Assembly (NCBI RefSeq): GCF_000143415.4
Contig: NW_003314478.1
Location: forward strand, 1-42,361
Origin: Selaginella moellendorffii
Lineage: Eukaryota > Plantae > Lycopodiophyta
Direction: 5' to 3'
DNA length: 42,361 bases
Position numbers and translations under genes: made by a program. Shown piece by piece: positions 4,253-42,361 of the stretch. The notes below the pieces were generated by a model. It was given only the letters and a program-made list of their open reading frames with translations. It searched no databases and was not told the origin of the DNA. The stretch's first letter is position 1; each line of letters begins with the position of its first letter.

Positions 4253-4301
4253 GAACCTGGACCTAGACTTGAACGAGTGGTGGGATTGGGTGTCGGCACC
4301 C

Positions 4302-13940: not shown

Positions 13941-16900
13941 AATCTAAGGGGAAAAAAACTGCTGCCTAGATTATGTTGTCAAATTGCTCAAGAATTTAAG
14001 ACTAGAAGTACCAATTGCGTTTCATGCTTGATAATTTCAAATATTGACAAAATGGGAAAAAAACTAAAAATCATTTGTCTATATAACACCCAACATTCCC
14101 AGGATCTGAGGGTGGACCTCCTGGACCAAAGAGGCTCTGAGAGATCGCGAGCAACTTCAATCAGACAGATACCTTGCAATACCTAGCGATTGAGGTGTGT
14201 GGAAAGTGCAGCAGGCGAAAATTGTGTTTGATGATCCGCCTGAGGGAATGTGTTTGATTCTATGTGAATGTTCTCAAAACTCTTCATGGAAAACTAGAAA
14301 ACGATCAATGTTTGATGCCTGACGACGATACTTGCTGCCATGATAGGTACTAACAAAGCAAATATTCCTTTGTGCCATGATGCTCACATGAAGCTCTTCA
14401 GAGCGATGGAGATGGAATGCGATGCCCTTGTCATGGCAGCGTGGGGCTGCTTTCTTCTGCAATCGACACTCCAGCCGACTCGATCCATCGCCTTGGACTC
14501 CTCCAAATCGTGCGGTCCTTCGGTATCTGACCTAGTCTCGCTGCACCAAACGACGATTAAGTCAATGCAAGTGCTATGTCCATATCACCCATGTTTTGTA
14601 TTACAGATTGGGCTTTACAGGAATCTTAGACAAGCACTCTTGATTCCTCTGACAACAGCACGCAATGTAGCTCCGACCTCTCAAACTCCTTGTCCATAGG
14701 ATAGTGGTGTGAGGTTCAGGGCCTTGGGCCACTGAACGAAGTATTAATGCTAAACTCCCAAGCATGGAGCTAAGGAGTGATGGAACCGGACTATGGAGCA
14801 ACTCTTGGGCATACAGCCTAAAGAGTGAAGGGACAGGAACCAAGAGTAATTTGGAACAATCCTAGAGTATCTAACATCCCAATGCTAGGACTAATATGCA
14901 AAACGGAGTTAAATGGAGTCTGGCACTATTTCGGCATACCAATGGCCTAATGCAAGGACATGGGTACTTTACCAGCTAGCATGGAATGGAAGTTGGGCTT
15001 ATACCCAAGCTAGACGCAGAACAAGGACAAGCATGCAAGTGAGAGCTAAACTATGCCGCAGGTTAGTCGGCCATGCTCTACCTACCCACTATCCCTACTA
15101 TACATTTGAAACCCCTCACAGCCGGAGCAAAGAAACCAAACCCATCGGTAAGGTTTAGATAGATTATTGTAAACAGGCAAATAGAGTTGTTTACACAGTC
15201 ATGCTCGATAGAGAGGCGAGTTATGTGACTAGTCGACAATAACTACCCCATGACTAAAGATTTCACCATGCACACGAAGTGCCGAAGCCAATCTGCCGAT
15301 ACTGGCCCAAATTCAAAGATCAATAGATGGACCATATCAAAGTCAGAGACAATGATATCTTAGAGACTTAAGTATCAGTGATTAAATCTTAGATTAAAAC
15401 ATAAAAGTATTCCAAGTAAGTTATCATCCGATAAACCAGTATTATAGTATAGAAACCACCAAGATCATCATGATTGGAAAACATAAGATTCACTATCCAA
15501 CAAAATTCAATAGTTAATGTATCATCAAGAAACCTCAATGATAAAACTTAACGATCAAATACTGTAGATAGAATGCCAAATAACTTATAAAAGATAACTC
15601 AAAGAACACAAAGTAACATTGATTGGTAAGCAAAATGCTCGTGAATGTATCAATCAAAGGAGAGAAATATCATAACTAACTCGAGCAACAATCAATAGAA
15701 TAAAATGAATGTTGCAGAACCAACAAATATTGTTTATGTCAACTATCACACTAGCCAATGCAAATAAATCCCAGGCAACAACACCAAGGAACTTAAGTTG
15801 CCTAAAGCAGTGTCAGTAACATCCTATTGATATCTCAACCCAAGAGATCATTCCAGAGCAAACCACAAGGAACTGTGGATATTGGGAAAAGCTATAAGCC
15901 ATCAAGGAGAATAACTAACCATCACGAAAGATCATCAATCATTCTATAATAAAGAGAGATGTATAATCATTGTCGAAGAAAGAATCTACCATCCCGAAGA
16001 ATAACAAATCATTCTTGATCAACAATAATCAAGCAAAACCTTTTGACAAAGATAATTCTTAGATGATAATCAATTATCACCAATGATTGCTAGATGCAAA
16101 AGCCAACTTCAGCATTGAAGCTAATGAGCCAAAAATGTTTTCCCTAATAACTTATAACAAATGGAACAATGAGCATAAAAACTCAAAGAACCAAAAGTTT
16201 GAAGAAGTCTATAGCCAAGTCTTGCCTAAAATGATCACAAGTCTTACATGAACTCATTTCAATACCAAAGAAGAAATCATGGCATAACCCACAATATCCC
16301 CCTCAACACATCCATAAGTTAAACTTCAAAATGTAAAGCTAATGAAAAGCATAATTGCATCAATCCAAAAGTCAAGCACAATGAAGCTATGCTCAACAAG
16401 TGATCACTAAACGATCCTTCATGAATTCATTTATAGCAAGACGTAACTCACTTCATAACAAGCATAAGAAAAATCATCAATGATCAATATATTTTAACTC
16501 AAATCTAACAAAGATTCAAACATTCCAATATCAATCATTAACTCTTCATCTCGTAAAGCTAGCATAGTTCACGACTAAATCACTTTTCAAGGAAAAGTCA
16601 AAGCTCAACCCCTACTAAATAATCTCGTCTAGAACACAACTAACTCAAACTTGCCACTCAATTTATTTGAATATCAACATAGTTGCTAACTAGCAAATGC
16701 ACAAATGCCAATAATATAAAGCCATAGCCAAATCATCAACACTATTTTCATCGAGACTAATGAAATTCAACATCAATCTTTCGGAGAGATATTTTATTTC
16801 ACTCAAATCTCAACATTAACAATGTCAATGATAAGGCATTACTTCAATGTCATCAACACCATAACAAAGCTAGAAGAAAGCACGAGTGAAAACACTTCCT

Positions 16901-19206
16901 CAAGGAGTAAATCACCACATCCAAGACTCAATGAAATCTAACACCACAGACTAGACATAACCAAATGATATCAACAGAGATAGAGTCAATATGCTAACAT
17001 GGAAAACCCATGTAAGTCTAACGACACGATTCTTCGCAACACCATTCAGTAAAGCAAGTCCATCACCGCTAAATCATTATCGAGCAAAGCAAGTATCAAA
17101 AGTCCTCAATGAAGTCTACAAGCAATTATTAGTCGCTAAGCAACTAACAATCACTCTTTCAACTTGCCTTCAAAGGACCCAACACTAAACTCATATCATC
17201 AAGTATGAGATAAAGGACAAACATAAACTAAATGACCCCTCGAATCCAACTTAGCTGTAATAAGCTCATTATCACATTTACCCAATAGCTCTAAGCATGC
17301 CTTGAAGAAGCTAGCTACACATGATCAACACTTAGTCGAAACAAAAATGAAGATTATAAGATGGACTCATATTGGTACATAACCTCCACTTAGACAAGCT
17401 ATAGTACAGGTACTAATATCTTAAACTCAAACAACTAAGTTGGACATTACTATCCTTAGCTAAGGTGCAGGACCATCAAGATCAAGTCAAGATCAGTGAG
17501 AGCTCACTACTTTTATAGAGTTTAACGAAATGCAAGGTGCAACCTGCTACTAAACATAATGCTACAGAAAAAAGGCACAAGGGTCACCCTTCTTCGAAAA
17601 GTGTAATAGCCACTTTTCTACACCAACTCCAGACTTTATCCAACTTAATTGCCTTAGCTTTAAAAGTTAACATCCTTTTTAGGCCGCATCATAAAAACTA
17701 CATACTAAGGTCTAAGGTAACTAAAGTCAACTCCAACCCTTTCACTAGTTTGTGTTGACTTACGAAAATGGAATGGTTTTCAAGCAAAGTGATCAATAAA
17801 TCAGCCATTGGAAAAGTCTAAGAAAATTTGTGGAAATTTTCTATCCTAGAGAAAGAATGATTTTCAGTCTAGAAGTGCAAACTTTCAAGACTCAATCAAC
17901 TTCTTCCTACTAACAAGTTCACATAGGTTCCCCTTAACATAAATTTTCAAGACCCAACAGCATGCTAAACAGTGAATATCTTGCCCATATTTCAAACATC
18001 CAACACCGACATCCACAAAATGCAAAATGAACATCCAAGACTTGATCACGAAGACTATATCTTCAGATATCTACATTGCATTAACACTCTTCTTTAATCA
18101 TTTTCAAGATCTAATGTAAAGTCAAAACACTAACAAAAAAAATGACATGGAAAATCAAGCTCTAAGGAAAATTCCTCATCACTCGAAATAACAATGCCAC
18201 TTCTACTAACACAAGTGCTAGTGATGTCAATGCCTCAAGTACATATCTTCATCCAACAATCTACTCCAAGTGCTAACGGATAAACTAACAAGCCATAGAA
18301 AGTGAATGCTATAACCCTTTCCAACATTTTATGGGCAACCTCTCACGGAAACAAGGAACTAACTTAAGCTTAGCATAATGGACCACTATCGAGAACCCAG
18401 TCAAAGTTACTAAAATGCTACTTCATGCAAGTAGACTAGCTTCACCATCAACCACTTTAGGGTTGATCATCATTTAACTAAGCAACTTCGTAAACACATT
18501 GATCATAATTATATGGATATGATAGAAATATCACAATGACTTGATCATCAATTGAGCAACACTTCTCTCATAAACTTTCTTAGATTGGACTGAAGGCAGT
18601 GTGAACGAAAGCCTAAGGTTTAGTCAAAGATGAGACCAAAAAGAGAGTTGTCAGGAACGAAGGATCAAACACGTAAATCATTTTCTCTTCTTGGAGAAAT
18701 GATTCGCAACGAGGTGCTAACTCATTTTGCTCATGTTCACATCATGCAATCAAGAGTCCCTACCTTGATGCATGTTGGAAATGATAGTCTTGTAAATGGT
18801 GAGTCATGGGATGGATAACAGTGAAGTGCTAAACCATTTTGTCTAAGCTTGCTATTAAAAGACTTAGGTTACAATACTCAATTCTTTTCCGGGGAACCTT
18901 GCTATTGCTCCTGGAGTAGCTTGGTGTTGGATTAGTTTTGAGTTTGGTTGGATAGAGAGCGACATGAGTTTGTCTGTTTTGTGAACAAAAAGTTAGTGGT
19001 GTTTAGTGTTATAAGTCTCTATTGGTGGAGTGTGGCATTTATATTGCACTTTGTCAAATCAAGTTTACATTTGATACTCACATAAACCTTTGAAGTAATG
19101 ATAATGGCATTGCTTGTACGGCAATGACTACTTGAACCAATAGATTAATCTTTATAGTCTTTAATTGATCCACTTATAATCATGCCTTGAAAGGATCCAC
19201 TAGTGC

Positions 19207-20355
19207 TGTTGCGAATATGACTTCGGGTATCGAAAGTTACCTGTCAGCTAGTCTTTACGGACACTCTTTCCTTACTGCTACGATGGCAGAAGGTCGGTAT
19301 TACTGGTTCCCTTTATTAGCCCCTCTTGTTCAAGTGTTAGTAAGCTGGGTTTAGCACATGTACTTAGCCAGATGGACATAAGGTAGGAACTCCTATGTAT
19401 TTTTAGCTGAGCATACTCAGCCTGGCTCTTAGTTCTCTTTTGCTCTGTTTTGCATTAGCTTGACAAGAACCCTTGCGTATTGAAATTAGTCCCTTAATAT
19501 CACTGGATGATAATTTACCGTGTTTGCCAAACACCCTCGCTATCATGCCCTTTGTGTTAGTCTCATTTCGGTCCCAAATGCTATTTATGGAAAGTGTCCA
19601 GATTTGCTTATTTGGCATATCTACGGAATGTAGAGATTGTCCTGAACACAATGGTGTTCGTCCTGTGTCCAAATTCGCAATCTAGCACCATTCCATATTT
19701 AGTAAATTTCGAGCTTGTCCTAGAGACTAACTCCTGATACTAAGTGAAGCTTGGGGTGAAAGCCCAAAACATGTGTTCCTCAAGGGGGTGGGGGGGGGGG
19801 GGGGCTGTGGGGTGTTCCAAATATATAGTAGGGATAATGGGTATGTCAGGCATGGCTAACCAACCTGAGGCATAGTCTAGCTCCCGCTTGCGTGCCTATC
19901 TTTGTTCTGTGTCCAACTTGGGTCTAAATCCAAGTTCCATTCTATGTTAGCTGGTGGAGTACCCATGTCCTTGTGTTAAGCCACTGGTATGCCAAAATAG
20001 CGCCAGACTTTGTTTGGCTCCATTTTGCGTGTTGGTCCTGGCATTGGGTTGCTGGTTGCTCCATGACTGTTCCAGGTCGCTCCAGGCTTCTGTCCCTGTG
20101 CTCCTTGGGCTGTATGCTTGGGAGTTGCTCCGTGGTCCGGTTCCATCACTCCTTGGCTCCACACTTGGGAGTTTGGCATTGTTCCCTTGTTCAATAGCCC
20201 AAGGCCTTGAACCTCGGGTTCTGCACCACTATCCTTTGGACACGTGGCATGTGACATGTGGCATCTATCACGTGGCATAAAGAGGGTTTATGTTCCGCTT
20301 TGTGGTGTTATCCTATGGTAAATCACCATAAGAGGTAAAAACCACATACGCTACA
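19207..20355 (+). repeat. Element Y 5' LTR (1149 bp)
   Basis: Homologous to 26076-27046 and to the revcomp of 27656-28824; poly-G tract ~19783-19804. Confidence 0.9.
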
Positions 20356-22043
20356 TTTGGTATCAGAGAATGAGTTTTGGCGAGTACTATCCAATGAGAT
20401 TGGGCAACTAGTCTCGTTGCATACGCAGAGATGAAAATGATGATCCGAATGGGTACACGTTTGGGTGCAAAGGCTTTGCAATTGTTCCTTGGATATGGAT
20501 TTGGTTACCTTTTTGTACCTTATGATGTGAACTTGCTCTTGGGCTCATAGAATGGATTTGAGGTGTACCGTTTTACATGAGTTTACGCTTGGGCTCGTGA
20601 GTGAGGCACATTAGCAACTCGAGGTTACACTTTGAGTTGGTAGGATTAATGTTAGTTTATCGGTGGTTTCATAAGTTGTTCCATGTACCATGAGTGAAAG
20701 TAAACTTTCCTTGGGTTTGCTATGAGTGGCAAATAGGCTGGTCCATAGCTATTTAACACGGCACTAGTGGATCCTTCCTAGGCATGATTATAAGTGGATC
20801 AATCAAGACTGTAGGGATTAGTCTATTGGTTTAGGTAGTTATTGCCGTGCTCTCTCATAAACTTTTCTTGGATTGGACTGAAGGCAGTGCGAAAGCAAGC
20901 TTGAGGTTTAATCAAAGTAAAGACCAAAAAGAAGGTTGTCAGGGACGAAGGATCAAACACATAAATCATCTTCCCTTCTTGGAAAGATGATTTGCAATAA
21001 GGTGTTAACTCATTGCTCGTGTTCATATTATGCAATCAAGAGTCCCTACCTTGATGCATCTTGGAAATGATGGTTTTACAAATGGCGAGTTGTGGGATGG
21101 ATAGTGGTGAAGCACTAATCCATTTTGTCTAGGCTTGCTATTGAAGATTTGGGTTGCAATGCTCAATTCTTTTCCGAGAAACCTTGCTATTGCTTTTTGA
21201 GTAGTTTGGTGTTGGATTAGTTTTGAGTTTGGTCGGAAAGAGAGTGGCATTACTCGTAGTGTTGCTCAATTGATGATCAAGCCATTGTGATTATTATATT
21301 ATATCCATGTGATAGTGAGCAATGTGTTTACTAAGTTGCTTGGTTAAATGATGATCAACCCCAAAGTGGTTGATGAAAAAGCTAATCTATTTACACATAG
21401 TAGCATTGTAGTAGCTTTGACTAGATTCTTAATGATGATCCATTATGCTAAGTTTAAGTTGGTACCTTGTTTCCTTGAGGGGTTGCCCATTGAGGTGTTA
21501 GAAAAGGGTTATAACATTCATTTGCTATAGCTTATCGGTTTATCCGTTAGCATTTGGAGTAGATTGTTAGATGGAGAAGGTGTGTAGTTGAGGCATTGAC
21601 ATCACTAACACTTGTGTTAGTGAAAGTGGCATGTTATTTTGAGTGATGAGAGGTTTTCTTTAGAGCTTGATTTTCCATGTTATTTTTCTTGTTAGTGTTT
21701 TGGCTTCACATTAGATTTTGAAAGTGGTTAAAGAAGAGTGTTAATGCAATATGGATATCCGAAGATGTGGTCTTCATTAAACGGGGCCTTTTATTTTCCA
21801 GCAAAACACCAAAAAACCGGGTGTGGTTTTGTTAAGCACGAAACCAGCAAAGAGCCTTTATCTAGAGGAGCTTACAATGAAAGTACCTATGGAAAGGGGG
21901 GTTGTACGTGAACTAGAGCCTAAAGGTCTTTTGAGATGTGGTCTTCGTGATCAAGCCTTGGATGTTCATTTTGCCTTTTATAGATGTCGGTGTTGGAAGT
22001 CGGAAATATGGGCAAAGATGTTCGATGCTTAAGTATACTATGG

Positions 22044-22143
22044 NNNNNNNNNNNNNNNNNNNNNNNNNNNNNNNNNNNNNNNNNNNNNNNNNNNNNNNNN
22101 NNNNNNNNNNNNNNNNNNNNNNNNNNNNNNNNNNNNNNNNNNN
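22044..22143. other. Assembly gap
   Basis: Run of 100 N. Confidence 1.
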
Positions 22144-22562
22144 GTTTGCATTCCTAGACTGAGAGTCATTCTTTCTCTAGGATGGAAATTTTCCACAAAT
22201 TTTTTAGACTTTTCCAATGGCTGATCTATTGATCACTTTGCCCGAAAACCATTCCATTTTCGTAAGCCAATACAAATTAGTGAAAGGGTTGGAGTTGAAT
22301 TTAGTTAATTTAAACCTTAGTAGGTAATTTGTATGATACGACCCGAAAGGGATGTTGACTTTTAAGGCTAAGGCAATTGAGTTGGATAGAGTCTAGAGTT
22401 GGTGTAGAAAAGTGGCCGTTGCATTTTTGTAGAAAGGTGACCATTGTGTTTTTCTTTTATAGCATTATATTTGGTGGTAGGTTGCACCTTGCATTTTGTT
22501 AAACTTTATGAGAGTAGTGAGCTCTCATTGATCTTGATTTAGTCTTGGTAGCCCTGCGCCTT

Positions 22563-23236
22563 TGTAGCGCATGTGATCATGGGATGAAATTTGGATATAC
22601 TGTCACCATGGATCCTTGGAACCTTGGGGGATAAATGGGGATAAAATAGCCACTAAGGGCTCTCTCATCAAGCAATTGCCCCTTTTAAAGTTGGCTTAAG
22701 GGGAGAGAGATAAGGTGTGCTACAGTTGGTATCGGAGCAAATGGCACGGGTTCGATTCTCATTGATTAGTGGCTACTTAAAAGTATAATATACCCTTGAG
22801 CAAGGTATATTCCTACCCCTAAATTTGAAATCGTACGTATTGGGCATCCATGCGTACGTCCTTCCTCTTGTATGGTGTATCCATGGACGAAGGTATCCAC
22901 CGTGGGACTGCGGTACGGGTGGATGACTAGTTGCCTCACATGGAATAACTAGTCTACACAATGGAAGGATTGGTAGATTGAGTGCGGAAATGGAAGTGTT
23001 GGTTCCCCTTGGCTCAGTAGGGGTTGTTAATCAATAGTCAATGAGGACATTAACATCTCTGAAGGGGGGGTGAGTGTAGCGCATGTGATCATGGGATGAG
23101 ATTTGGATATACTGTCACCGTGGATCCTTGGAACCTTGGGGGATAAATGGGGATAAAATAGCCACTAAGGGCTCTCTCATCAAGCAATTGCCCCTTTTCC
23201 AGTTGGCTTAAGGGGAGAGAGATAAAGTGCGCTACA
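22563..23236 (+). mobile_element. TRIM (terminal-repeat retrotransposon in miniature), 674 bp, nested in Y
   Basis: 162-bp LTRs 22563-22724 and 23075-23236 (TGTAGCGCA...TGCGCTACA); PBS 22727-22738; PPT 23061-23074; TSD GCCTT/ACCTT; empty site ACCTT in copy X (~17462, minus). Confidence 0.95.
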
Positions 23237-26075
23237 ACCTTGGCTGAGGATAGTGATGTTCAATTTAGTTGTTTAAGGTTAAAATGTTGGTACCCATACT
23301 ATAGCTTTGTCTATGAGGAGGTTGTGTACCGATATGAATTCATCTCATGGTCTTCACTTTAGTTTTGACTAAGTGTTGGTCATGCATAGCTAGCCTCTTT
23401 AAGGCATGCTTAGAGTTGTTGGCTAGACGTATCGGTAAGCTTATTGCAATTGAGTTGGATTCGAGTGGTCATTTAGTTTGTGCTTGTCCATGAACATTTA
23501 TCTTGTACCTGGGGTATTACATTCATGTTAGATGAGTATATGACTTGATGGCACGAGTTTAGTGTTTGGGTCTTGTGAAGGCAAGTTGAAAGAGTGATTG
23601 TTAGTTGCTTTACAACTAGTGATTGCTTGTAGACTTCGTAGAGGACTGTTTGACACTTGCTTCACTCGATGATGATTTAGCAATAATAGGTTTGCTTTAC
23701 CGGATGGTGTTGCGAAGGATCGTATTGTTAAATTTGCATGGTTTTTCCATGTTGACATAATGACTTTACCTTTATCGATATCATTTGGTTGCGTTTAGTT
23801 CATAATGTTGAATTTCATTAAGTCTTGGATGTGGTGATTCACTCCTTGATAAAGTGTTATCTATAGCTGAGTATTGTTGAAGAACTAATCTCAGATACTA
23901 AGTATAGTATTTTCAACTTTGATTAGCTTGGTTGCTAGAGAGCTTTGGGTGGTGATTCACTTTTGCTTTCTTTTAGCTTTGTTTTAGTGCTGATGGCATT
24001 GAAGTGATGCCTTGTCGTTGACATAGTTAATATTGAGATTTGAGTAAAATGAGATATCTCACATAAAGATTGATGTCGAGTTTCATTAGTCTCAATGAAG
24101 ATAGTGTTGATGATTTGGCTTTTGCTTTATGTTATTGGCATTGGTGCATTTGCTAGTTATTAACTGTATAGATGTTCAAATGAGCTGAGTGGCAAGTTTG
24201 AGTTAGCTGTGTTCTAGATGAGATTGTTTAGTAGGGGTTAAGCTTTGAGTTTTTCCTTGAAAAGTGATTTAGTCGTAGACTATACTAACCCTACAAGCGG
24301 AAGAGTTAATGATCGATATTGGAATGTTTGAATCCTTGTTGGGTTCAAGTTGGGATATATCGATCATTGATAGTTCTTTTTGTGCTTGTTATGAAGTGAG
24401 TTACGTCTTGCTATAAATGGATTCATGGAGGATTGTTTCGTGATCACTTGTTGAGCATAGTTTCATTATGTTTGGTTTTTGGATTGATGCAAATCTGTTT
24501 TTCATTAGCTTTGCATTATGAAGTTTAGATTATGGATGTGTTGAAGAGGATATTATAGGTTGTACCATGATTTCTTCTTTAGCATTGAAATTAGTTCATG
24601 TGAGACTCGTAATCATTGCTAAGCAAAAACTTGGCTATAGGCTTCTTTGAACTTTTAGAGTTTTCATGCTCATTATTCCATTTGTTATGAGTTGTTAGGG
24701 AAAACATTTTTGGCTAGTTAGCTTTAATGTTAAAGTTAGTATTTTGCGTTTGGTGATTATTGGTGATAATTGACTATCATCTAAGATAGTTGATTATCCT
24801 TATCAAAAAGTTTTGCTTGATTGTTGTTGATATAAAATAATTCATTATTCTTTGGGATGGTGGATTCCTTCTTTGACGATAATTATGCATATCTCTTTTT
24901 GATGGGATGATTAATGATCTTTCATGATGGTTAGTTATTCTCTTTGATAGCTTTTGGCTTTTCACAATACCACATGTTTTTTGTGGTTTGTTCTAGATTG
25001 GTCTTTTGGGTTTGAGACATTGGTAGGATGTTGCTGGCACTTGCTTAAACAACTCTGATTCCTTAGTATTATTGATTGGGATCTATTCAAATTAGCTGAT
25101 GCAATAATTAGCATGAATGAGTGTTTGTTGGTCTTGCCATATTCATTTTGTTCTATTGATTATTGCTCAAGTTCGCTTTGATAGATTCGGATGTTATTTC
25201 CTTTGGATGATACATTTGCAAACATTTTGCTTGCAAGTCAATGATACTTTGTGTTCTTTGAGTTATCTTTAGTAAGTTGTTTGGCATACTGTCTGCCATC
25301 TTTGATAGTTAAGTTTCATCATTGAGTTTCCTTGATGATATACTTGCTCTTGAATTTTGTTGGATGGTGATTCTTATGTTTACCAATTATGATGATCATG
25401 GTGGTTCCTATATTATAATACTAGTTTATCGAATGATAACTTACTTGGAATACTTTTGTGTTCTAATCTAAGATATATTCACTAATAATTAAGTCTCTAA
25501 GATATCATTGTCTATGACTTTGATATTGTCCATCTATTGATCTTTGCGTTTGCACCAGTATAGGTAGACTGGCTTCGACACTTCGTATGCATGGTGAAAT
25601 CTCTTGTCATGGGGTAGCTATTGTCGATTGGTCACATAACCTGCCTCTTTGTCGATATTCCTTATTCCGTTGAAAGGGTGTGACCGTGTAAACAACTCTA
25701 ACTACCTGTTTACAGTAGTTTATCTAAACCTTACCAACGGGTTTGGTTTCTTTGCTCAGGAGGGTTGGGGCCTCTGGCTTCTCTTTCTATGTCCCTACGG
25801 GTAGGGGCGTATCAAACTTTTGTAAGCTGAGTGACACCCAGAGCAGCAAGGGTGGCTGACTTTGTTGGTCATTTCCTTGTTAGCGACGGCCGGAAGGTGT
25901 CTGAATTGGTAGCGCATCTGTGTTAGACAAAGAGGTTACCCCTTAACTCATTTAAGTTGGTGCATTTCTCACATAGTGTGAGTACCGTGAACTTTTTATG
26001 GAGTTGTTTCCTTGGCGGTATTCTAGACTGGAGTATGCATCGACGAGGACGTCGATCTTCCCTAGGGGGGGAGAG

Positions 26076-27046
26076 TGTCGCGAATGTGAGTTCAGGTATC
26101 GAAAGTTACCTATCGGCCAGTCCTTACGGACACTCTTACCTTACTGCCACGATGGCAGGAGGTCGGTATTGCTGGACCCTTTATTAGTCCCTCTTGTTCA
26201 AGTGTTAGTAAACTGGACTTTGCATCTGTACTTGGCCGGATGAGCATAAGGAAGGAATTCCTAAGTGTCTATTTAGCTGAGCATACTTGGCCCGGCTTGT
26301 TAGTTCTCTTTTGCTCTGTCTTGCACTGGCTTGACAAGAACCCTCGCATATTGAGATTAGTCCCTTAATATCGCTACATGATAACTTACCGTGTTTGTCA
26401 AACACCCTCGCTATCATGCCCTTTGTGTTAATCTCATTTCAGTCCCAAATGCTATTTATGGAGAGTGTCCAGATTTGCTTGAATCAGGGGGGGGGGGTGC
26501 CGAGCTGTGGGGGTTTCCAAATGCATAGTAGAGATAGTGGGTAGGTCAAGCATGGCTGACCAACCTGACATATAGTTTAGTTCCCACTTGCATGCCTGTC
26601 CTTATTCTGCATCCGGCTTGGGTCTAAGTCTAAGTTCCATTCCATGCTAGCTGGTGGAGTACCCATATCCTTGTGTTAGGCCACCGGTATGCCGAAATAG
26701 CATCAGACTCCGTTTGGCTTCGTTTTGTGTGCTGGTCCTGGCATTGGGATGCTGGTTGCTCTAGGACTATTCCAGGTTGCTTCGGGCTCCTGTCTCTTCA
26801 CTCCTTGGGCTGTATGCTTGGGAGTTGCTCCGTGGTTCGGTTCCACCACTCCTTAGCTCCACACTTGGGAGTTTGGCACCATTCCTTCGTTTAGTGGCCC
26901 AAGGCCCTGAACCTCGGGTTCCACACTATTGTCCTTTAGACACGTGGCATCTGTCACATGGCACAAAGAGGGTTTAAGTTCCACTTCGTGGTGTTATCCT
27001 ATTGTAAATCACCATAGGATAAAAGGTAGAAACCACGTGCGCTACA
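26076..27046 (+). repeat. Element Y 3' LTR (971 bp, internal deletion near 26480)
   Basis: Follows the PPT; ends GCTACA, then TSD. Confidence 0.9.
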
Positions 27047-27225
27047 AGTGCCATGCTAAACAGCTACAGACAAGCCTATTTGCCACTCATAACAAACCCA
27101 AAGAAGGTTTACTTTCACCTATGGTACAAGGAACAACTCATGGAACCACCAATAAGCTAACATTAATCCTGCTAACTCAAAGTGTAACCTTGAGTTGCTA
27201 ATGTACTTCACTCACGAGTCCAAGT

Positions 27226-27640
27226 GCAAACTCGTGTAAACGGAACAACTCAATCCCTCTTATGAGCCCATAAGCAAGCTCACATCATATGGTACAAAAA
27301 GGTAACCAAACTCTATACCCAAGGAACGAATGCGAAGTCTTAGCACCCAAACGTGTACCCACTCGGATCATCGTTTTCATCTCTACGTATATAACGAGAT
27401 TAGTTCTTCAATCTCATTGGATAGCACTCGCTGAGACTTGCAAACTCATGTGAATGGAACAACTCAATCCCTCTTATGAGCCCATGAGCAAGCTCACATC
27501 ATATGGTACAAAAAGGTAACCAAATTCCATACCCAAGGAACGAATGCCAAACGTGTACCCACTTGGATCATCATTTTCATTTCTACATATACAATGAGAC
27601 TAGTTGCCCAATCTCGTTCGATAGTACTCGCTGAGACTCA
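27226..27640 (-). repeat. ~200-bp tandem duplication in the leader of element X
   Basis: GCAAACTC..GGAACAACTCAATCCCTCTTATGAGCCCAT..CTCGCTGAGACT occurs twice; single copy in Y (20370-20590). Confidence 0.85.
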
Positions 27641-27655
27641 TTCTTTGATACCAAA

Positions 27656-28824
27656 TGTAGCACACGTGGGTTTTACCTTTTATCTTATGCTGATTTACCA
27701 TAAGATAACACCACAAATCAGAACCTAAACCCTCCATATGCCACGTGTCATATGCCATGTGTCATATGCCACATGTCCAAGGGCCGGGGGTGGGGACCCC
27801 AGGTTTCAGGCCCTTGGCCCTTGAAAAAAAGGACGGGGCCCAACTTCTTAGGCTGGGGTTTAGGGGGGGATGGACTGGGCCCAGGGACCACTTCTGGGGT
27901 TTCCCCCCCAAAAAGGAAAGGGCCGGGGCCCGGAACCATTTGGGAACATTCTTGGGGTATTTAACTTCCCAATCCCGGCCCCCTTTGGGCTCCTTTTTGT
28001 AGGTTATTTTGGGCGTTTTTTGGCCATCCCGGGGCCTTACCCCAGGGACATGGTTACCTGGGAAGAAAATTTGGGTTTAGCCCCAGCCGGGCCCCAGAAA
28101 AAAGCCCCCCCCTTAACCGGGGGTTAAATTTTTTCCCGGGTTGGGGGGCCAAGCCAAAAAGCCCCCCCTTTCTTTTATAAACATTTGGGACCCCCCAAAG
28201 CTTAAAAAACCCCCCCCCCCCCCCCCCCCCTCCCCCTTGCCCCCTTGGAGGAACACATGCTTTGGGCTTTCACCCCAAGCCTCCCTTAGCATCAGGAGTT
28301 AATCTCTAGGACAAACTCAAAACTTACTAAATATGGAATGTCCTTAGATTGTGAATTTGGATATGGGACAAACACTATTGTGTTTAACACAATCTCTACA
28401 TTCTATAGATATGCCAAATGAGCAAATCTAGACACTTTCATAAATAACATTTGGGACCGAAATGAGACTAACACAAAGAACATGATAGCGAGGGTGTTTG
28501 GGAGACACAGTAAGCTATCATCCAACGATATAAAGGAACTAATTTCAATACGCAAGGGTTTTTGTCAAGCGAGTGCAAGATAGAGCAAAAGAGAATTAAC
28601 AAGCCGGGCCAAGTATATTTGGCTAAATAGACACTTAGGAATTCCTTCCTTACATTCATCTGGCCAAGTACAGATGCAAAGTTTAGTTTACTAACACTTG
28701 ATCAAAAGGGACTAATAAAGGAGTTTAATAATACCAACTTCCTGCCATCGTGGCAATAAGGAAAAAGTGTCCATAAGGATTGGCCAACAGATAACTTTCG
28801 ATACTCGAAGTCACATTTGCGACA
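27656..28824 (-). repeat. Element X 5' LTR (middle part looks like low-quality sequence)
   Basis: Revcomp of the Y LTR, from TGTAGCAC to ATTTGCGACA. Confidence 0.85.
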
Positions 28825-29019
28825 AATGGGATCCCTTAGATTTCCATACCACTCCATAAATGGAACTAAGTGGGCTTTCCTGTAGCTAGCCATCAGGAAG
28901 AATGAGGTCAAAATAGTTCCCGACTCTTCTAGTGCTCACGTCCTTGTACTCGTAAGTGACGCCAACATAAGCGCCATGCTAGGAAGCGATCTATCTGGCT
29001 TTGAATTGAAGAGAATCCC
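28825..29019 (-). pseudogene. Remnant of the unit A Lnt-like gene (a further remnant lies just before 14691)
   Basis: Homologous to 37000-37195; encodes YRKAHLVPFMEWYGNLRDPI; 5' half of the gene is deleted. Confidence 0.8.
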
Positions 29020-32046: not shown

Positions 32047-32229
32047 TTAATCACCTCCGCCACAGCCCCCACCACCACAGCCTCCTCCACCGTGGCCTCC
32101 ACCATGACCACCACCAGAGCCTCCACTGTGGCCTCCACCATGGTGGCCACCACTAAACATTGCTCCCGCGAAATCGGAGCGTCTTCTTGGCTTTCGCCTT
32201 TTTGGAGATGCAAAGAAACTGAAACACAT
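32047..32229 (-). CDS. Small (60 aa) Met-Cys/polybasic/Gly-rich protein gene 1, unit B
   Basis: MCFSFFASPKRRKPRRRSDFAGAMFSGGHHGGGHSGG...GGGCGGGGCGGGD. Confidence 0.65.
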   Translation of the reverse strand: MCFSFFASPKRRKPRRRSDFAGAMFSGGHHGGGHSGGSGGGHGGGHGGGGCGGGGCGGGD

Positions 32230-32596
32230 TTTGGATTGATTGCTTGCATGCAAGGGGGCATAATCTTCTGCTTATACACAGGCTAGAAGGCAATTTGAGA
32301 CTTTGACTCAGTGGAAGCCACGAAGAAAGCAATGATAGCGCGTGGACCTGGAGAAGTTTATGCAATCAGTGCCACGTCGTGACACTTCATCAGAGTGTTC
32401 AAGAAACGCAAGATGTGCATTTGTCTATCCAACCTTTAAGGAATACGTGCATAAAATCTCGTTAAATTGCGCGTGAAGGAAGTTGTTTTGCTTGCTTCAT
32501 ATGGTCAGGCCTTGTGGCCAATCAGATGTTCTCCTGCCTAGTATATAAGCGCAAGCCTCCTCGCATCGATCATACCTTTATCTTGCGCAATCCAAG

Positions 32597-32851
32597 ATGT
32601 GTTTCGGTTTCTCTCAATCCTCTAACAGGCAAAAGCAGAGGCGAAGGCGCCCGTCTGCAGCAACGGGCGCCTTCATGGGGGCTGCCGGCAGTGGTGGCGG
32701 AGCTTGTGCTGGCACTGGCGGCGGAGGAGGCTGTGGTGGCGGTGGTGGTGGTGGTGGTGGTGGCTGCAGAGGAGGCGGTGGTGGTGGCTGCGGAGGAGGC
32801 GGTGGTGGTGGCTGCGGAGGAGGCGGTGGTGGAGGCGGTGGAGGCTGCTAA
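32597..32851 (+). CDS. Small (84 aa) Met-Cys/polybasic/Gly-Cys-rich protein gene 2, unit B (intact)
   Basis: MCFGFSQSSNRQKQRRRRPSAATGAFMGAAGSGGGACAG...(GnC) repeats ending in C; TATA box at ~32543. Confidence 0.7.
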   Translation: MCFGFSQSSNRQKQRRRRPSAATGAFMGAAGSGGGACAGTGGGGGCGGGGGGGGGGCRGGGGGGCGGGGGGGCGGGGGGGGGGC

Positions 32852-33181: not shown

Positions 33182-34418
33182 TTACGATTCGCGTCGGGTT
33201 CTCCTTTGGCGGGCGCCCTCGCCTTCCTTCTCAATCTCGTTGCCAGCCGCGTCGTCCTCCGCCTTGTCCTTGGAATCGTCCGGGCTGGAGATGTCTTCCT
33301 TCTTGGACTTCTCTACAGTCACCTACGCAAGACAAACGACCATGACAGTCCAAAACTCGCGCAGGGTATTGCTAATTGTACCTTCGTCTTCTTGGGGGGC
33401 GATTTCTTGCCACCAAATAGAATCTTAAACAGCGTGACCACCACGACGAGCGGGATCACAGCTATGGCGCTCAAAGAAATGGTTGGGAACTTCTCGGCCT
33501 TCTCCAGAAGATCCTGTCACAACGAAAAGAAAAAGTTAGAAGACGAGACAAAGTTCATGCTCGTGTGTTTTACTTACAAGAATCTTTTCCTTCTGTGACG
33601 CCAAAGCCGGGATGTCGGCAACCTTGCGCAGGTACTCAAACATCTTTGCCTGAAAAGATTCAAGGTCGTCACACACACACACACACACACACAAAAAAAA
33701 GACAGACAAAAGAAGATAAAGGAAAAGTACCTGGATGCCGTCAGGACTCGGAGTCGCTTCTTCAATTTTTTGCTTCTCCTTCTCAGCCTCGTACTTGGGC
33801 TTCCATTTCGTCTCCCTGTACTCTGCTGCCACAGCCTCGTCGGTCGCCACCAGGATGTTGTCAAAAAGAATGCCGTCCTGCATCGTCNNNNNNNNNNNNN
33901 NNNNNNNNNNNNNNNNNNNNNNNNNNNNNNNNNNNNNNNNNNNNNNNNNNNNNNNNNNNNNNNNNNNNNNNNNNNNNNNNNNNNNNNNNNNNNNNNNNNN
34001 NNNNNNNNNNNNNNNNNNNNNNNNNNNNNNNNNNNNNNNNNNNNNNNNNNNNNNNNNNNNNNNNNNNNNNNNNNNNNNNNNNNNNNNNNNNNNNNNNNNN
34101 NNNNNNNNNNNNNNNNNNNNNNNNNNNNNNNNNNNNNNNNNNNNNNNNNNNNNNNNNNNNNNNNNNNNNNNNNNNNNNNNNNNNNNNNNNNNNNNNNNNN
34201 NNNNNNNNNNNNNNNNNNNNNGCGATGGCGGGTACTTGAGGTGATGCTCGATGTGCTTGTCGGATTTAGGGCCTTTGTGCTTGTAGATGACGTGCACCTT
34301 GTTGGTGGTGCCACATCTGTCCAGCCCAAACATGATTGAGTAGGGGGATTCGTTGCCGAAATTGACGGGTGTCCATTGCAGGAGAAAGAACTTGAGATAC
34401 ACTCTAATCCCTTCTGGA
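33182..34418 (-). pseudogene. CNX: Calnexin pseudogene, unit B (5' part missing; spans an N gap)
   Basis: Same exons and introns as unit A; 10-nt deletion after GLEC; truncated at the same 5' point. Confidence 0.85.
33888..34221. other. Assembly gap
   Basis: Run of N. Confidence 1.
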
Positions 34419-35679: not shown

Positions 35680-37500
35680 CAGAATATAAGGAAAAAAAAA
35701 CTGCTGCCTGGATTATGTTGTCAAATTGCTCAAGAATTTAACTAGAAGTACCAATTGCGTTTCATGCTTGATAAATTCAAATATTGACAAAATGGGAAAA
35801 AAAACAAATCATTTGTCTATATAACACCCAACATTCCCAGGATCTGAGCGTGGACCTCCTGGACCAAATCACCAGGGGCTCTGAGAGATCGCGAGCAACT
35901 TCAATCAGACAGATGCCTTGCAACACCTAGCGATTGAGGTGTGTGGAAAGTGCAGCAGGCGAAAATTGTGTTTGATGATCCGCTGAGGTGTTTGATTCTA
36001 TGCGAATGTTCTCAAAACTCTTCATCGAAAACTATCAAACGACCAATGTTTAATGCCTGACGACGACCATGATAGGTACTAACAAAGCAAATATTCCTTT
36101 GGGTCACGATGCTCACACGAAGCTCTTTGGAGCGATGGAGATGGAACGCGATGCCCTCGTCATGGCAGCGTGGGGCTGCCTTCTTTGCAATCGATACTCC
36201 AGCCGACTCGATCCAACGCCTTGGACTTTTCCAAATCGTGCGGTGCTTCGGTATCCAGCCTAGTCTCGTTGCACCAAACGACGATTAAGTCAATGCAAGT
36301 GCTACGTCCATATCACCCATGTTTTGTATACACTTCCTTACAGATTGGGCTTCACAAGAATCTTAGACAAGCACGTTTGATTCCTCTGACAATGGCACTC
36401 AATGTAGCTCCGACCTCTCAAACTCCTTGAAGGATCGGTCACCAGTGATGTAGAACACAAAGGCGGGAGGGGACGTGTCAAGGATATACATCACTGCTCC
36501 AAGAGGGAGGCAGAGCATGGAGACGTGTACCGCAGCGAGTGCTGCCACTAGCCAAGCGAAACGAAAGCCGTAGCCTGTAAAGTGTCCAGGCCTTCCCGAG
36601 TACTGGGAGCGCCATGGCGAAGACCGAGTCGGAGATACCTTCCCTGCCAAAGAAACAGAAGAACATTAGAGAGCTTTGATTGATCAAAACTGTCACACCT
36701 GTAATCGAATGTCTGGAGAGATGGATCTACAACCGCTGAAACGCCTCCCGTGGAGCATCGAAACCAACTGAAGCCATTCTCCACGACACGGAAAGCATCG
36801 GCCTCTTTCGCCCGGGGACTGCTTGCTCCCCAAGTCGCGGTTGATATCAATCCTAAAAGCATTCACCAGAAACTTAGAGAACACCATCATAACTGCGCTC
36901 TACCTCTTTTTCCCGGCCTGGCGCATCAGGTCTGGGAACTCGAAATCGTAACAAATAGCTCCTCCAATCCGGCCGAGCTCGGTCTTGATGACAGGAAGAA
37001 TGGGATCCCCTGGAGTTCCATACCAATGGAACCAAGTGGGCTTTCCTGTAGCTAAATCCAATGGAGCCATCGGGAAGAACGAGGTCGAAATAGTTCCCGA
37101 CTCTTCCAGTGCTCACGTCCTTGTACTCGTAAGTGATGCCAACGTAGGTGCCGTGCTGGGAAGCGATCTGTCCGGCTTTGAATTGGAGAGAATCCCTCTC
37201 CTGTTTGAGGTCGAGTTTCACCGCAGCCTCGGACCAGAGGACCAATCGATCGCCGGCTCGGAAGTGCTGGCTCGTCCTGTTGAGCATCACATCCATGTCC
37301 TCGTAGAAGAGGAACTTGCCCAGGACGCAAGAGACCAGCACTGTTTTCTTCATCGTGAGGGCGATGTCCTTCTGGAAGAAATCACCCGAGAAAATGGAGA
37401 CCCTGGCGCTGCTGTAGAACAAGATTGAGAAAGCAATGGCCCCAAACGCCAGGGAGTGGCCCACGATGCAGCTGTGTAGCATGCTTCTCGTCGGATTTTT

Positions 37501-38147
37501 CCTTAACGGGCTGTGGCTCACCTGTTAACTTGATTCAACCGTTGGCAGTCGTCAGATTGGCCACAGCCCGTTAACTTGATTCAACCGTTGGCAGCCGTCG
37601 GATTGAGTCAGGTTCTCTGCGAGAATGTGGCTGACAATTGCCAGGTTCTCCAGAACCTAGCTGCCAGCTGCCAGGTTCTGGAGAACTAGGCTACCAGTTG
37701 CCAATTCTAGAGAACCCTCTCATCCTCCAATAACATTATTCCACGTGTCTGTTAACGGTCTCACCACAGCCCGTTAAGGCTGTTCCCGGGTACAGCCACG
37801 GTGACAGTATATTCAAATGAGGACATTGACTATTCCATTGTGTAGACCAGTTATTTTTACCAATCCTTCCATTGTGTAAACCAGCTATTCCATGTGAGGC
37901 ACTAGAACCTAGCTGCCAGTTGCAGGTTCTGGAGAACCAGGCTACCAGTTGCAGGTTCTGGAGAACCAGGCTACCAGTTGCCAATTCTAGAGAACCCTCT
38001 CATCCTCCAATAACATTATTCCACGTGTCCGTTAACGGTCTCGCCACAGCCTGTGTCCGTTAACGGTCTCGCCACAGCCCGTTAAGGCCGTTCCCGGGCA
38101 CAGCCACGGTGACAGTATATTCAAATGAGGACATTGACTATTGACTA
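37501..38147. repeat. Patchwork of inverted and direct repeats at the left junction of the TRIM-derived insertion
   Basis: CCTTAACGGGCTGTGG (37501) is inverted at 37560, 37764 and 38071; duplicated block at ~37652 and ~37904; short TRIM fragments. Confidence 0.75.
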
Positions 38148-38947
38148 CCATGTGAGGCAACTAGTCATCCACTCGTACCGCAGTCCCACGGTGGATACCT
38201 TCGTCCGTGGATACTCCACACAGAAGGACGTACGCATGGATGCCCAATACGTACGATTCCAGACATATGCATGGATGCCCAATACGTATGATTCCATGTG
38301 AGGCAATTAGTCATCCACTCGTACTGCAGTCCCACGGTGGATACCTTCGTCCGTGGATACTCCACACAGAAGGACGTACGCATGGATGCCCAATACATAC
38401 GATTCCATGTGAGGCAACTAGTCATCCACTCGTACCGCAGTCCCACGGTGGATACCTTCGTCCGTGGATACTCCACATAGAAGGACGTATGCATGGATGC
38501 CCAATACGTATGATTTCAAATTTAGGGGTAGGAATATACCTTGCTTAAGGGTATATTATACTTTTAAGTAACCACTAATCAATAGGAATCGAACCCGTGC
38601 CATTTGCCCATAAGCAAGGTATATTATACTTTTAAGTAACCACTAATCAATAGGAATCGAACCCGTGCCATTTGCCCAATACGTACGATTCCATGTGAGG
38701 CAATTAGTCATCCACTCGTACCGCAGTCCCACGGTGGATACCTTCGTCCGTGGATACTCCACACAGAAGGACGTATGCATGGATGCCCAATACGTACGAT
38801 TCCAGACATATGCATGGATGCCCAATACGTACGATTCCATGTGAGGCAATTAGTCATCCACTCGTACCGCAGTCCCACGGTGGATACCTTCGTCCGTGGA
38901 TACTCCACACAGAAGGACGTACGCATGGATGCCCAATACATACGATT
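38148..38947 (-). repeat. Five 111-bp tandem units derived from the TRIM internal region
   Basis: Units start CCATGTGAGGCAA at 38148, 38294, 38405, 38691 and 38837; 35-bp linkers at 38259-38293 and 38802-38836. Confidence 0.92.
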
Positions 38948-39213
38948 TCAAATTTAGGGGTAGGAATATACCTTGCTCAAGGGTATATTATACTTTTAAG
39001 TAACCACTAATCAATAGGAATCGAACCCGTGCCATTTGCTCCGATACCAACTGTAGCGCACCTTATCTCTCTCCCCTTAAGCCAACTAGAAAAGGGGCAA
39101 TTGCTTGATGAGAGAGCCCTTAGTGGCTATTTTATCCCCATTTATCCCCCAAGGTTTCAAGGATCCACGGTGACAGTATATCCAAATCTCATCCCATGAT
39201 TACATGCGCTACA
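38148..39213 (-). mobile_element. Rearranged copy of the same TRIM: single 5' LTR, PBS and tandemly amplified internal region
   Basis: LTR 39052-39213 (162 bp); PBS revcomp 39038-39049; no intact 3' LTR. Confidence 0.9.
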
Positions 39214-39799
39214 ACGGCCCTGTCGTGGAGAATCGCCGAGAACCACACCATGAGGAATGAGATCCCATCGATCCCCCACACGCCGGCGCTCATCACCAGC
39301 GGCAAGATTGTAACCTGGGAAACGGCGGGATGGAGGAAGGAGCCAACGCCGCCGAATCGATTCCACAACAACCACGCCGTGGTCCAGATCGACGCGAATA
39401 CCAGCGGCTGGGACGTTCTTGCTCGGTCAAAACGCTTCCTGTAGCCGATGCTTGCAACAAATGGGAGGAGAAGAAACATCCACAGCGCCAGTGCCCAAAT
39501 TCTTCCCACAATTGGCACGCTGCTGGTGGTGGAGTTGTCCAGGCTCACCTTTCCCAGGAAGAATGCCAGGAACGCCAGGCTTGTGGCAGTGGTGTGGAGG
39601 ATGAGCATCAGGAGAATTGTGAGCGCCCCAGAGCTCCATGAGCAAGAATTGTGCGAAATCCCTGATTTGTGGAAGAAATGCAAGAGGAAAAATGGTTGGA
39701 GCCAAGAACAAATTGCAACAGTTTGGAAACCAAAGAAGAAAGTGCACGCCACCGAGAGAATGGCCAACGGTGCCACCTTCTTCATGTCTCTTGGTGCTT

Positions 39800-42361
39800 G
39801 TTTAATTTATATTCTTATTATATTCATAAAAAATTAAAATATTTATAAGGTGAAAGAAAAATACTATAAATATTTAGGGAATATACTTTAATTTATTTGT
39901 TTTAATTTTTTCACTCATAAAATTCGTTTGTAATCAGTGCTTAATAGTATATCTTAAATATAGACTAAACGTCTAAAGTTAACTGAAATCCCTCAGAGGA
40001 AAAAAAAAATTGTCCTACTTGACTTTCTTGTAATACAAGACTCCTATCCCCTTCCCGATATTTACATCTTCTTTCCCACTTGTATTTTTTGGATTATAAA
40101 ATATTAAAACCATGAAATAATTATATTTGTTTAAGCTGCTACCTAGAGGTCATTAATATTTGATATGGCCAAAGATAACTCACCATCATTTAAAGAAATT
40201 TTTTGATTTTTGGACTACAAATTTTTGAATTTTTGCTTTGTTCCCACCAAGTTGCAAAAGTTATTGAAAACAATCTAAAAAAATGTTATATTCAAACAGG
40301 GCTATTATTCTGATTTACATAAAAGTTTAATATAAAAAGAAAGAACCAATTATACTTTATTTTTCAATTAGTTAAAAATTTTGGGATATTTTGGATTAAA
40401 TATTCTTAGGTTTGAATAATAATGCGTTAGATAACTTCCCAGAAATTAAAATTATATTAGTTGGCTAGGGGAATCACACTATATGTTTAATAAACATCTA
40501 ATAAAAGAGTGGGGTTCTCAGGGGAGTGCTACTTAAAAAAATGATCAAATATAAAAAGAAAAAGTTTATGAATAAGAATGCATATCTTTTTTCAATTAGT
40601 TAAAGATTTTGGGATATTATTGTGAAATATAGAAAGAAAGAGCATATGAATAAAACATTTCATTTTGCAACTGATTAAGGGTATTAGGATATTGAGTGTT
40701 AGGATAACCACTTTTAGCACTAACTTTGATATTTTAAAATATTCTACCATCTAATAATTAAATTCATTTTGTGTTTAAACACTTTTTTAGTATATTCTAC
40801 TTTATTCTACTATTTAATTTGGATTGATCAATTAGGTTAATAAAAATACTAAACAGTGTTACAAACAAATTATTCTTCTCATAATGAGTTTTTATTATTA
40901 TCATTAAATATTATTTAATCTAGGCATGTTCTTACAACAATCTTTATTTTGGGTTGGATTATGAACACTAACATTCATTTTATTCAATCCTGCAAAAGCC
41001 TTTATGAAGCAAGAGAGATTTACTTGAATCTTAAAAGGAATCATCCACTTTCTGATGATTCCTTCCTCAGCAACAAACTCATCCAGATGTTTGGCAAATA
41101 TGGAAGCCCACAAGAGGCACCCCAAATCTTTGATACCATCAAACACAAAGACTCCTTTTCGTGGGCTTTCACTCAAAACTCCCATTCTAAACTCCCATCT
41201 TAAACATGCAAAAGAGATCTTCGACAAAATGCCGCAAAAGGATGTCTTTGCATGGACATCCATGCTCTTGGCATATGCCCGAAATGGGCATCTTGTCAAT
41301 GCCCAAAAAACATTTGATGAGATGCCGCAACACAGCCTTCTCTCATGGAGTGCAATCCTGTCAGTCCACGCACACAGCTGGGATCTAAAATATGCCGAAA
41401 GGATTATCTCCGGGATGCCCGAGTATGATCTCGTGTCTAGGAATTCCATTCTTGCGGCATACGCCCGGAACGGGCATGTAGAGGGAGCGAAACGTGTTTT
41501 CGATTCTATGGAGGCTCGTGACCTTGTGTCATGGACGACAATCTTGGTTGCCTTGTCGCAGGGCGGAGATTTGCACGGAGCAAAGCTTTTGTTTGATGCA
41601 ATGCCGCAGCACGATCTCGTCGCCTGGACCACGATGCTTGGCGCGTACGGACTGAACGAGGATGTCGATTCGGCACAAAGGATTTTCCGCGAGATGCCTG
41701 AGATAGATCTCGTTTCGTGCAAAACCGTGATGCGATGCTGCCGTGATGCTAGACAATCAAAGCTTATATTTGACTCCATGGCGCAGAGAGCTCTCTTGTC
41801 GTGGACAACAATGCTCGCTGTTCTTGCCAAGAACAGCCCCGGGGAGGAAACCAAGAGCTTTTTCTATCAAATGCCGGAGCTTGATCTTACTTCCTGTACG
41901 ATAATGTTGCTCTCACAACCCTCAGACTAGGAGCTTGTGAAGATTTTATCAAATGCCGCAGCTAGACCTGTGCTCTTGGAACTCTATTCTTTCGGCGTAT
42001 GCTCAATCTGGGCATTGTGACTTTGCTTTAAGACTCTTTAACGAGATGCCCGAAATGGATATGGTTTCGTGGAACACAATGTTAAATGCGTTTGTTCTAA
42101 CTAGCAAACTACGTGAAGCTGCTTTACTCTTCACGACGCCAAAGATCTAATCTTAAGCATGCCGTTCGTTCCCAGTGCTCTCGAGTGGACGTGCCTTCTC
42201 GGAGCATGCAAGAGCCACGAGGATTATAACAATCTAATACTGGGAGACGATGTAGTGAGATCTGTAATGGACGTAGCCGACGCAACCCCCAAGACACCCT
42301 ATGCTTTACTAGCAAATGTCTACACAAGCTCCCAAACAAAAAATCAATGATAGCGCGTGGA
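39800..42361 (+). repeat. Tandem segmental duplication unit C (partial)
   Basis: AT-rich spacer plus PPR, collinear with units A and B. Confidence 0.9.
40961..42350 (+). pseudogene. PLS/E PPR pseudogene, unit C
   Basis: Frameshift near 41175-41195; TAG at 41928-41930; ~380-bp internal deletion at ~42130. Confidence 0.9.

Follow-up and report, generated by a model that had tools for sequence, protein, structure and literature searches.

A pseudogene of an Lnt-like family in a tandem array on a Selaginella moellendorffii scaffold

What has become, in the genome of a lycophyte, of a gene shaped like that of a bacterial N-acyltransferase? Lnt, which N-acylates S-diacylglyceryl-Cys apolipoproteins downstream of Lgt and LspA, is usually regarded as a bacterial enzyme, and an Lgt/Lsp pathway has, to our knowledge, not been reported from plants. 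The question is raised by a 42,361-nt stretch of Selaginella moellendorffii DNA (scaffold GL377603.1, assembly GCA_000143415.2; the whole stretch is referred to below as the window). All the pieces of an Lnt-type gene, namely the N-terminal membrane domain, the nitrilase-fold domain and the C-terminal helix, are present on its minus strand at positions 36399-39785 (the focal copy). An earlier inspection of the letters without database searches (the sequence-only reading) had taken this locus for a domesticated and possibly horizontally acquired N-acyltransferase gene. The analysis described here shows that the focal copy is a pseudogene; very probably, it is a dead tandem duplicate of an inherited gene of an Lnt-like family, situated within a segmental repeat of roughly 10 kb (delimited by self-comparison), the intact kin of which are Lnt-like.

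Remains of the gene, their lesions and the RNA

In a Pfam profile search, a minus-strand piece of the focal copy matched LNT_N (PF20154, E = 7.7e-5) and the pieces downstream of it matched CN_hydrolase (PF00795, E = 1.6e-6), while matches to the NCBIfam model TIGR00546 (lnt) were weak (23.8 and 13.8 bits). The motifs WSE, YRKAH, ICYD, FRVVENGFSWFRCSTGGVSAVVDP and WTLY..FAWL were each found. These matches and motifs bear out the full Lnt architecture that the sequence-only reading had described. When the central 152-aa piece was compared with 1.84 billion representative proteins, it was found to share 92% identity with P0001, an intact Selaginella protein of 545 aa (E = 6e-79); the same search returned a 373-aa protein, P0002, at 89% identity, plus 93 remoter relatives. 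A single-sequence search of this piece alone against the PDB gave no match. Lesions were called by aligning the focal copy to four paralogous copies, which are described further below: one called unit 0 and two genes at locus L001, all three intact, and the broken copy annotated as P0002. The resulting gene structure is as follows (positions are those of the window; TM, transmembrane helix).

39213-39785, minus strand: exon 1, first part; ATG at 39785-39783 followed through 191 open codons, encoding the membrane domain through TM6 (from the translation, the LNT_N match and the alignment to intact copies)
37503-39212, no strand assigned: composite repeat insertion of 1,710 bp in place of 23 coding bp, in the cytosolic TM6-TM7 loop (no counterpart in the four paralogous copies)
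36904-37502, minus strand: exon 1, second part; encodes TM7 plus the initial two thirds of the nitrilase domain (from the alignment to paralogues)
37230-37228 (E), 37044-37042 (K) and 36953-36951 (C), minus strand: catalytic codons in the second part of exon 1
36853-36903, minus strand: intron 1; 51 bp, GT..AG, phase 2 (from the alignment to intact copies and the P0001 protein)
36699-36852, minus strand: exon 2, with the FRVVENGFSWFRCSTGGVSAVVDP motif; bears an 11-bp deletion
36644-36698, minus strand: intron 2; 55 bp, GT..AG, phase 2 (from the alignment, and from the splice joint in RNA reads of paralogues)
36399-36643, minus strand: exon 3; final membrane helix and tail, with a private 2-bp deletion and an early TGA

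Relative to the intact copies, six lesions were found in the focal copy, four of them frame-breaking indels. Besides the insertion at 37503-39212, these comprise an additional G in the run 37462-37460 (a +1 frameshift); a deletion of 8 bp between 37026 and 37025, with which F-V-E is lost, including the fourth catalytic Glu of Lnt; a deletion of 11 bp in exon 2, between 36844 and 36843; a deletion of 2 bp in exon 3, between 36578 and 36577, private to this copy; and a TGA at 36401-36399, about ten codons ahead of the stop of unit 0. The catalytic E, K and C codons survive, although no longer in one frame. The alignment to the four paralogous copies therefore substantiates both the insertion and the frameshifts that had been proposed from the letters, and the two introns of ~50 bp proposed at the same time were also recovered. 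The focal copy has accumulated 39 private substitutions, the most of all copies (5-31 in the others); their synonymous and non-synonymous counts are small and in part distorted by sequence aligned into the insert, and give no basis for an inference about selection.

The 8- and 11-bp deletions are common to the focal copy and the P0002 copy, so that the two must either have had a common broken ancestor or have exchanged sequence by conversion. The nearest relatives of the two ends of the gene are consistent with either course, the 3′ part being closest to the P0002 copy (97.8%) and the 5′ part to unit 0 (95.6%). These two deletions would thus already have disabled the focal copy by the time it and the P0002 copy last had sequence in common; the 1.7-kb repeat insertion, the +1 frameshift, the 2-bp deletion and many private substitutions would have been added to the focal copy later. 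The insertion contains a 162-bp unit with terminal inverted repeats (39052-39213), tandem arrays of 111/146 bp and duplicated units of ~300 bp; neither a tRNA nor a match to an Rfam family was found in 37503-39212. Further copies of its repeat are present elsewhere in the window, at 22558-22946 (94.6%) and 23075-23236 (97.5%). The insertion is a composite dispersed repeat, to which no transposon superfamily was assigned.

Transcription was analysed by mapping ~12% of the reads of each of two RNA-seq runs on positions 36300-39900. Of the 182 reads that mapped, 180 were only 95-99% alike to the focal copy and 2 were at least 99% alike; in run X22, the number reaching at least 99% was 0 of 126. 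At two sites where the focal copy has a private letter, every read carried the letter of the paralogues (position 37115, 21/21 and 30/30 reads; position 37149, 20/20 and 33/33 reads). RNA depth in the insert was about nil, being zero over 37752-39082 save for a trace in one bin, with traces at both insert edges. Loose read ends at 39213 read L-D-E-N-L-S-K-M-E-K, the form that the TM6-TM7 loop takes in the paralogue P0096, and those at 37025 matched the L001 genes. Three RNA reads of X22 and a contig of run X1 show the 55-bp splice joint of intron 2; since these are 95-99% alike to the focal copy, they come from paralogues and not from the focal copy itself. Because the reads carry paralogue letters, it is the intact paralogues that are transcribed and spliced, while no transcription of the focal copy was detectable in the reads sampled. 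Spliced expression, which the sequence-only reading had proposed to look for by RNA-seq, was in this way confirmed for the paralogues and not for the focal copy. Given the insertion, the four frame-breaking indels and the premature stop, and given that the RNA carries paralogue letters, the focal copy does not qualify as a functional gene: it is a non-functional relic, a silent pseudogene rather than the domesticated gene that had been envisaged.

As a side observation, the L001 pair was the main source of the RNA reads that cross-mapped to the nitrilase region of the focal copy.

Resemblance of the family to Lnt, and its relatives

An alignment of 27 family members showed E290, K352 and C385 to be invariant and E360, which follows the Lys by eight residues, to be nearly so. 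The corresponding residues of Escherichia coli Lnt are E267, K335, C387 and E343, and the spacing from K335 to E343 is the same (PMC5500890). The family thus has the Glu-Lys-Cys triad and the Lnt-typical fourth Glu of loop 5, the codon for which has gone from the focal copy with the 8-bp deletion; an aromatic and then an acidic residue after the Cys, and an invariant Asn, are further points of likeness to Lnt. TIGR00546 was the most widely matched NCBIfam model (27/27 members; best family E = 4.2e-24) and the top NCBIfam match of P0001, the one member tabulated, and each member scored better against lnt than against the models of soluble nitrilases. When the family profile was used, the best PDB match was Pseudomonas aeruginosa Lnt (E = 1.7e-12), in an alignment that took in the membrane domain; when P0001 was used alone, in a single-sequence search, only soluble nitrilases were returned, Lnt emerging with the family profile only. 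Alignment of the family to eleven bacterial Lnt-like proteins with hhalign gave a probability of 100 and E = 3.5e-64 over 441 columns (residues 21-499).

The predicted structure agreed with the profiles. The AlphaFold2 model of P0001 (predicted local distance difference test score, 88.3; predicted TM-score, 0.89) has eight long helices round a nitrilase fold. The comparison with Lnt that the sequence-only reading had suggested favoured its view, since the top 24 Foldseek matches of the model were all Lnt structures, aligned full-length (524-564 columns, TM-scores 0.61-0.74), whereas soluble nitrilases aligned over only ~250 columns (TM-scores by query, 0.32-0.38). In the ESM Atlas, the neighbours of the family were mostly bacterial Lnt clusters, with TM-scores of up to 0.80/0.86. 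The Lnt enzymes of E. coli and P. aeruginosa (PDB 5N6H, 5N6M, 5XHQ, 6NWR) have in common with the family the eight-helix membrane domain, with the nitrilase fold placed between TM7 and TM8; P0001 has this architecture (an LNT_N membrane domain, a nitrilase domain and a last TM), and in the focal copy all the pieces are present but interrupted. The soluble amidases of the nitrilase superfamily (Nit2, N-carbamoylputrescine amidase, formamidase) share the alpha-beta-beta-alpha fold and the triad, but cover ~250 of the 545 residues of P0001 and have no membrane domain. Judged from the profiles and the predicted fold, the family resembles Lnt over its full length, catalytic residues included. Unlike bacterial Lnt, the eukaryotic family has introns and motifs of its own (QPSWTWG and Y-x-K-A/S-H-P-V), and P0001 lies below the TIGR00546 cut-off; moreover, a diacylglyceryl-Cys lipoprotein acceptor cannot be assumed for the plant family, and the focal copy is broken.

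The named green relatives were Sphagnum species, the liverwort Calypogeia fissa, Klebsormidium nitens and Volvox carteri; a further relative was a eukprot protein of locus SM000170. Other named eukaryotic relatives were from Paulinella and Mucochytrium, and from many early-diverging fungi, Mucoromycota among them (Mortierella, Basidiobolus, Rhizomucor, Gigaspora, Dichotomocladium and others). These uncharacterised ‘CN hydrolase domain-containing’ membrane proteins are 25-44% identical full-length, keep the same invariant residues and form one clade with Selaginella. In maximum-likelihood trees built with a quick search, eukaryotes were separated from bacteria by a starred branch (100 and 96, both starred). 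Selaginella fell within a streptophyte clade (96, starred) with Klebsormidium, the SM000170 protein, Sphagnum and Calypogeia; this was sister to a clade containing Volvox, and the all-green clade was also starred (98). This position, and the 92% identity of the central piece to P0001, place the focal copy in the eukaryotic Lnt-like family. The Selaginella genes differ from the other eukaryotic members by a long stem branch (1.1 changes per column) and by tandem amplification with birth-and-death turnover. The signature motifs of the family, searched with a 6-sequence alignment, were found in 0 of 185,579 prokaryotic species genomes. Since the green clade stands apart from bacteria and no prokaryote carrying the motifs was found, the horizontal acquisition raised by the sequence-only reading is not supported. 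The pattern is that expected if the family reached Selaginella by descent within Viridiplantae; it is at odds with an import from bacteria or fungi into Selaginella, and does not bear on an ancient transfer at the base of the eukaryotic groups.

Among the prokaryotic matches of a word search, the best E-value to P0001 (3.5e-19) was that of a scattered Lnt-like subfamily related to protein P0098 and encoded in bacterial metagenome-assembled genomes (loci L003-L011, from Terriglobia, Acidimicrobiia, Xanthobacteraceae, Spirochaetota, Myxococcota and Saprospiraceae). Its branch lengths, near-identical across phyla, suggest transfer among bacteria.

Alternative readings and the proposed chemistry

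Three other accounts of the locus were considered. It might be a working, horizontally acquired gene of bacterial type, with apparent breaks that are in fact introns or sequencing noise; the Pfam and NCBIfam matches to LNT_N and lnt, and the predominance of bacterial Lnt clusters among the ESM feature neighbours, would agree with this. However, the 1,710-bp insert is not bounded by canonical splice sites (its joint ends in GT..TG or TG..TG on the gene strand), two of the four separate frame-breaking indels recur in another copy, and the eukaryotic motifs occur in no prokaryotic genome while the plant sequences group with algae. This account is already largely refuted, and is extremely improbable. 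The lesions might otherwise be artefacts of a repeat-rich draft genome of two haplotypes, the real copy being intact. There is indeed an N gap at ~33.8-34.2 kb, the window contains many repeats, and one contig of DNA run X18 has a variant within the insert that differs in length by 515 bp; yet another X18 contig spans 36577-37262 without a gap and with one mismatch, covering both shared deletions, and the same 8- and 11-bp deletions were found independently in the P0002 copy, 47 kb off. An assembly error is thus scarcely credible as the source of the lesions.

The remaining alternative is that a truncated product is still made. A frame of 198 codons is open on the minus strand from the ATG at 39785 (39785-39189) and matches the Lnt membrane domain; its product would consist of TM1-6 without the catalytic domain, and might regulate the intact enzymes or serve as a decoy for them. 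That the frame starts at the native ATG, that the region upstream is ~90% identical to its counterpart in unit 0 and that some RNA depth was recorded at 39204-39808 are in keeping with such a product. This RNA, however, carries non-focal letters at sites private to the focal copy (all or nearly all reads had the paralogue letter at 39247 and 39260, and reads with non-focal letters were also seen at 39345 and 39458), none of the X22 reads reached 99% likeness, and the focal copy is the one with most private changes. A truncated product is therefore considered very unlikely. The account preferred, that of a dead duplicate of an inherited gene with Lnt-like intact kin, has points weighing against it too. 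From the native ATG on, the focal copy has kept its first 191 codons open, the partial RNA sampling leaves room for weak or tissue-specific transcription of this copy, and the X18 DNA supporting the deletions may derive from the plant line that was also used for the assembly. P0001, the only member checked in this respect, scored 67.7 bits against an equivalog cut-off of 132.9 for TIGR00546, and so falls outside the Lnt equivalog; the profile check suggested by the sequence-only reading was therefore positive as regards matches to LNT_N, CN_hydrolase and lnt, and negative as regards this threshold. No seed plant was present among the named relatives, most matches carrying no name, and the enzyme role of the eukaryotic family is a predicted one.

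The proteins of the parent family are predicted to have eight membrane helices and a nitrilase-fold domain outside the cytosol; over their full length they are homologous to bacterial Lnt. The K/R-rich loops of P0001 (residues 41-49, 119-125 and 191-212) are at the positions of the cytoplasmic loops of Lnt, so that the catalytic domain should face the lumen or the outside. From the conserved residues and the fold, we infer that the intact relatives (unit 0, the L001 pair and P0096) would work like Lnt. Glu290 would activate Cys385, to which an acyl chain of a membrane glycerophospholipid would become bound as a thioester; the intermediate would be stabilised by Lys352 and Glu360, and the acyl group would finally be handed to an amine on the non-cytosolic side. 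It is proposed, tentatively and with rather less than even confidence, that the intact Selaginella, algal, bryophyte and early-fungal members may be active Lnt-type enzymes that N-acylate a luminal or extracellular amine (a protein N-terminus or the head group of an aminolipid) by means of membrane phospholipid. If this is true, they would represent a route of lipidation in eukaryotes that has so far escaped description and that seed plants have apparently lost, and the array would document how quickly such genes arise and die in Selaginella. Literature searches on eukaryotic or Selaginella Lnt found nothing relevant. Taken by itself, the focal locus is a decayed duplicate of an ordinary kind, and its interest lies in marking a tandemly turning-over, Lnt-shaped family with intact, transcribed members just a few kilobases away. 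Since that family spans chlorophytes to lycophytes plus early fungi and keeps all the catalytic residues, while the known substrate pathway is not described in plants, the question it poses is what gets N-acylated.

The tandem array and its neighbourhood

Positions 1-668 of the window are 100% identical to positions 668-1 of locus L002, and the window thus continues the scaffold of that locus. The genes of P0001 and P0002 are both on scaffold GL377603.1, and NCBI assigns P0002 and the close paralogue P0096 to S. moellendorffii. The copies of the Lnt-like gene in the array are the P0002 copy (left of the window), unit 0, a 195-bp remnant and the focal copy. The order of the repeat unit and the two other copies seen in the window are as follows.

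Repeat unit, in order: Lnt-like gene (minus strand), PPR gene (plus), Gly-rich low-complexity stretch, calreticulin gene (minus), short PPR gene (plus)
1-238, minus strand: 5′ end of unit 0 (first 79 codons); the remainder is at L002:431-2186, left of the window
28825-29019, minus strand: 195-bp remnant of another array copy, from the central nitrilase part; reads SYRKAHLVPFME, with stops and frameshifts

The three copies that the sequence-only reading had recognised (1-238, 28825-29019 and the focal copy) were confirmed by pairwise matches, window positions 1-361 being 89.8% identical to 39548-39895, and 28825-29019 being 82.5% identical to 36999-37196. Its suggestion that unit 0 might be the intact copy held as well. 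As reconstructed, unit 0 has 549 codons open over three exons and keeps WSE, YRKAHLVPFVE and ICYD; a 549-aa CN_hydrolase gene has been called at its position in L002, and it is 94.7% identical to P0096. The L001 genes (L001:10001-11760 and L001:16778-18531) are an intact tandem pair encoding 545 and 543 aa, 96% identical in DNA and located ~290 kb away on the same scaffold. The P0002 copy (LOC112349345, annotated as encoding 373 aa) is at L002:10001-11173. In addition to the two deletions it shares with the focal copy, it has lost 68, 9, 13 and 47 bp, and the donor of its intron 2 has changed from GT to AT; the C-terminal 40 residues of the P0002 protein are frameshifted sequence. A word of caution on annotation is in order here, as LOC112349345 is a broken copy and not a gene for a 373-aa protein.

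The remainder of the copy represented at 28825-29019 is missing, and a 14-kb block separates the remnant from the 3′ flank of that copy. This block (14691-28824) sits where the Lnt-like copy of the second unit would be expected. A large part of it is made up of two long arms in inverted orientation (~14.7-18.6 kb against 21.2-26.9 kb) that are 76-86% identical, and it carries both of the further copies of the focal insertion repeat.

Several other elements were noted in the window. Within the first repeat unit, an apparently intact open reading frame (ORF) for a Copia-type retrotransposon polyprotein of 1,371 aa (gag, integrase and RVT_2) lies at 4269-8384 (plus strand). Adjoining this insertion, a 685-aa ORF with a zf-RVT domain (8843-10900, minus strand) is probably the tail of an element like a long interspersed nuclear element. 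ORFs rich in Gly, Cys and His, of low complexity and built on tandem repeats of 12-24 bp, were found at 32047-32253 (minus) and 32597-32851 (plus), with similar arrays at 3306-3421 and 8534-8619; such ORFs are found again in every repeat unit, in the interval from the PPR gene to the calreticulin gene. The corresponding place in L002 has no gene call, and these ORFs have no evident signal peptide. Pieces of the calreticulin gene have been duplicated with the unit and lie at 11699-12600 and 33536-34402 (both minus strand), the second of them split by the N run.

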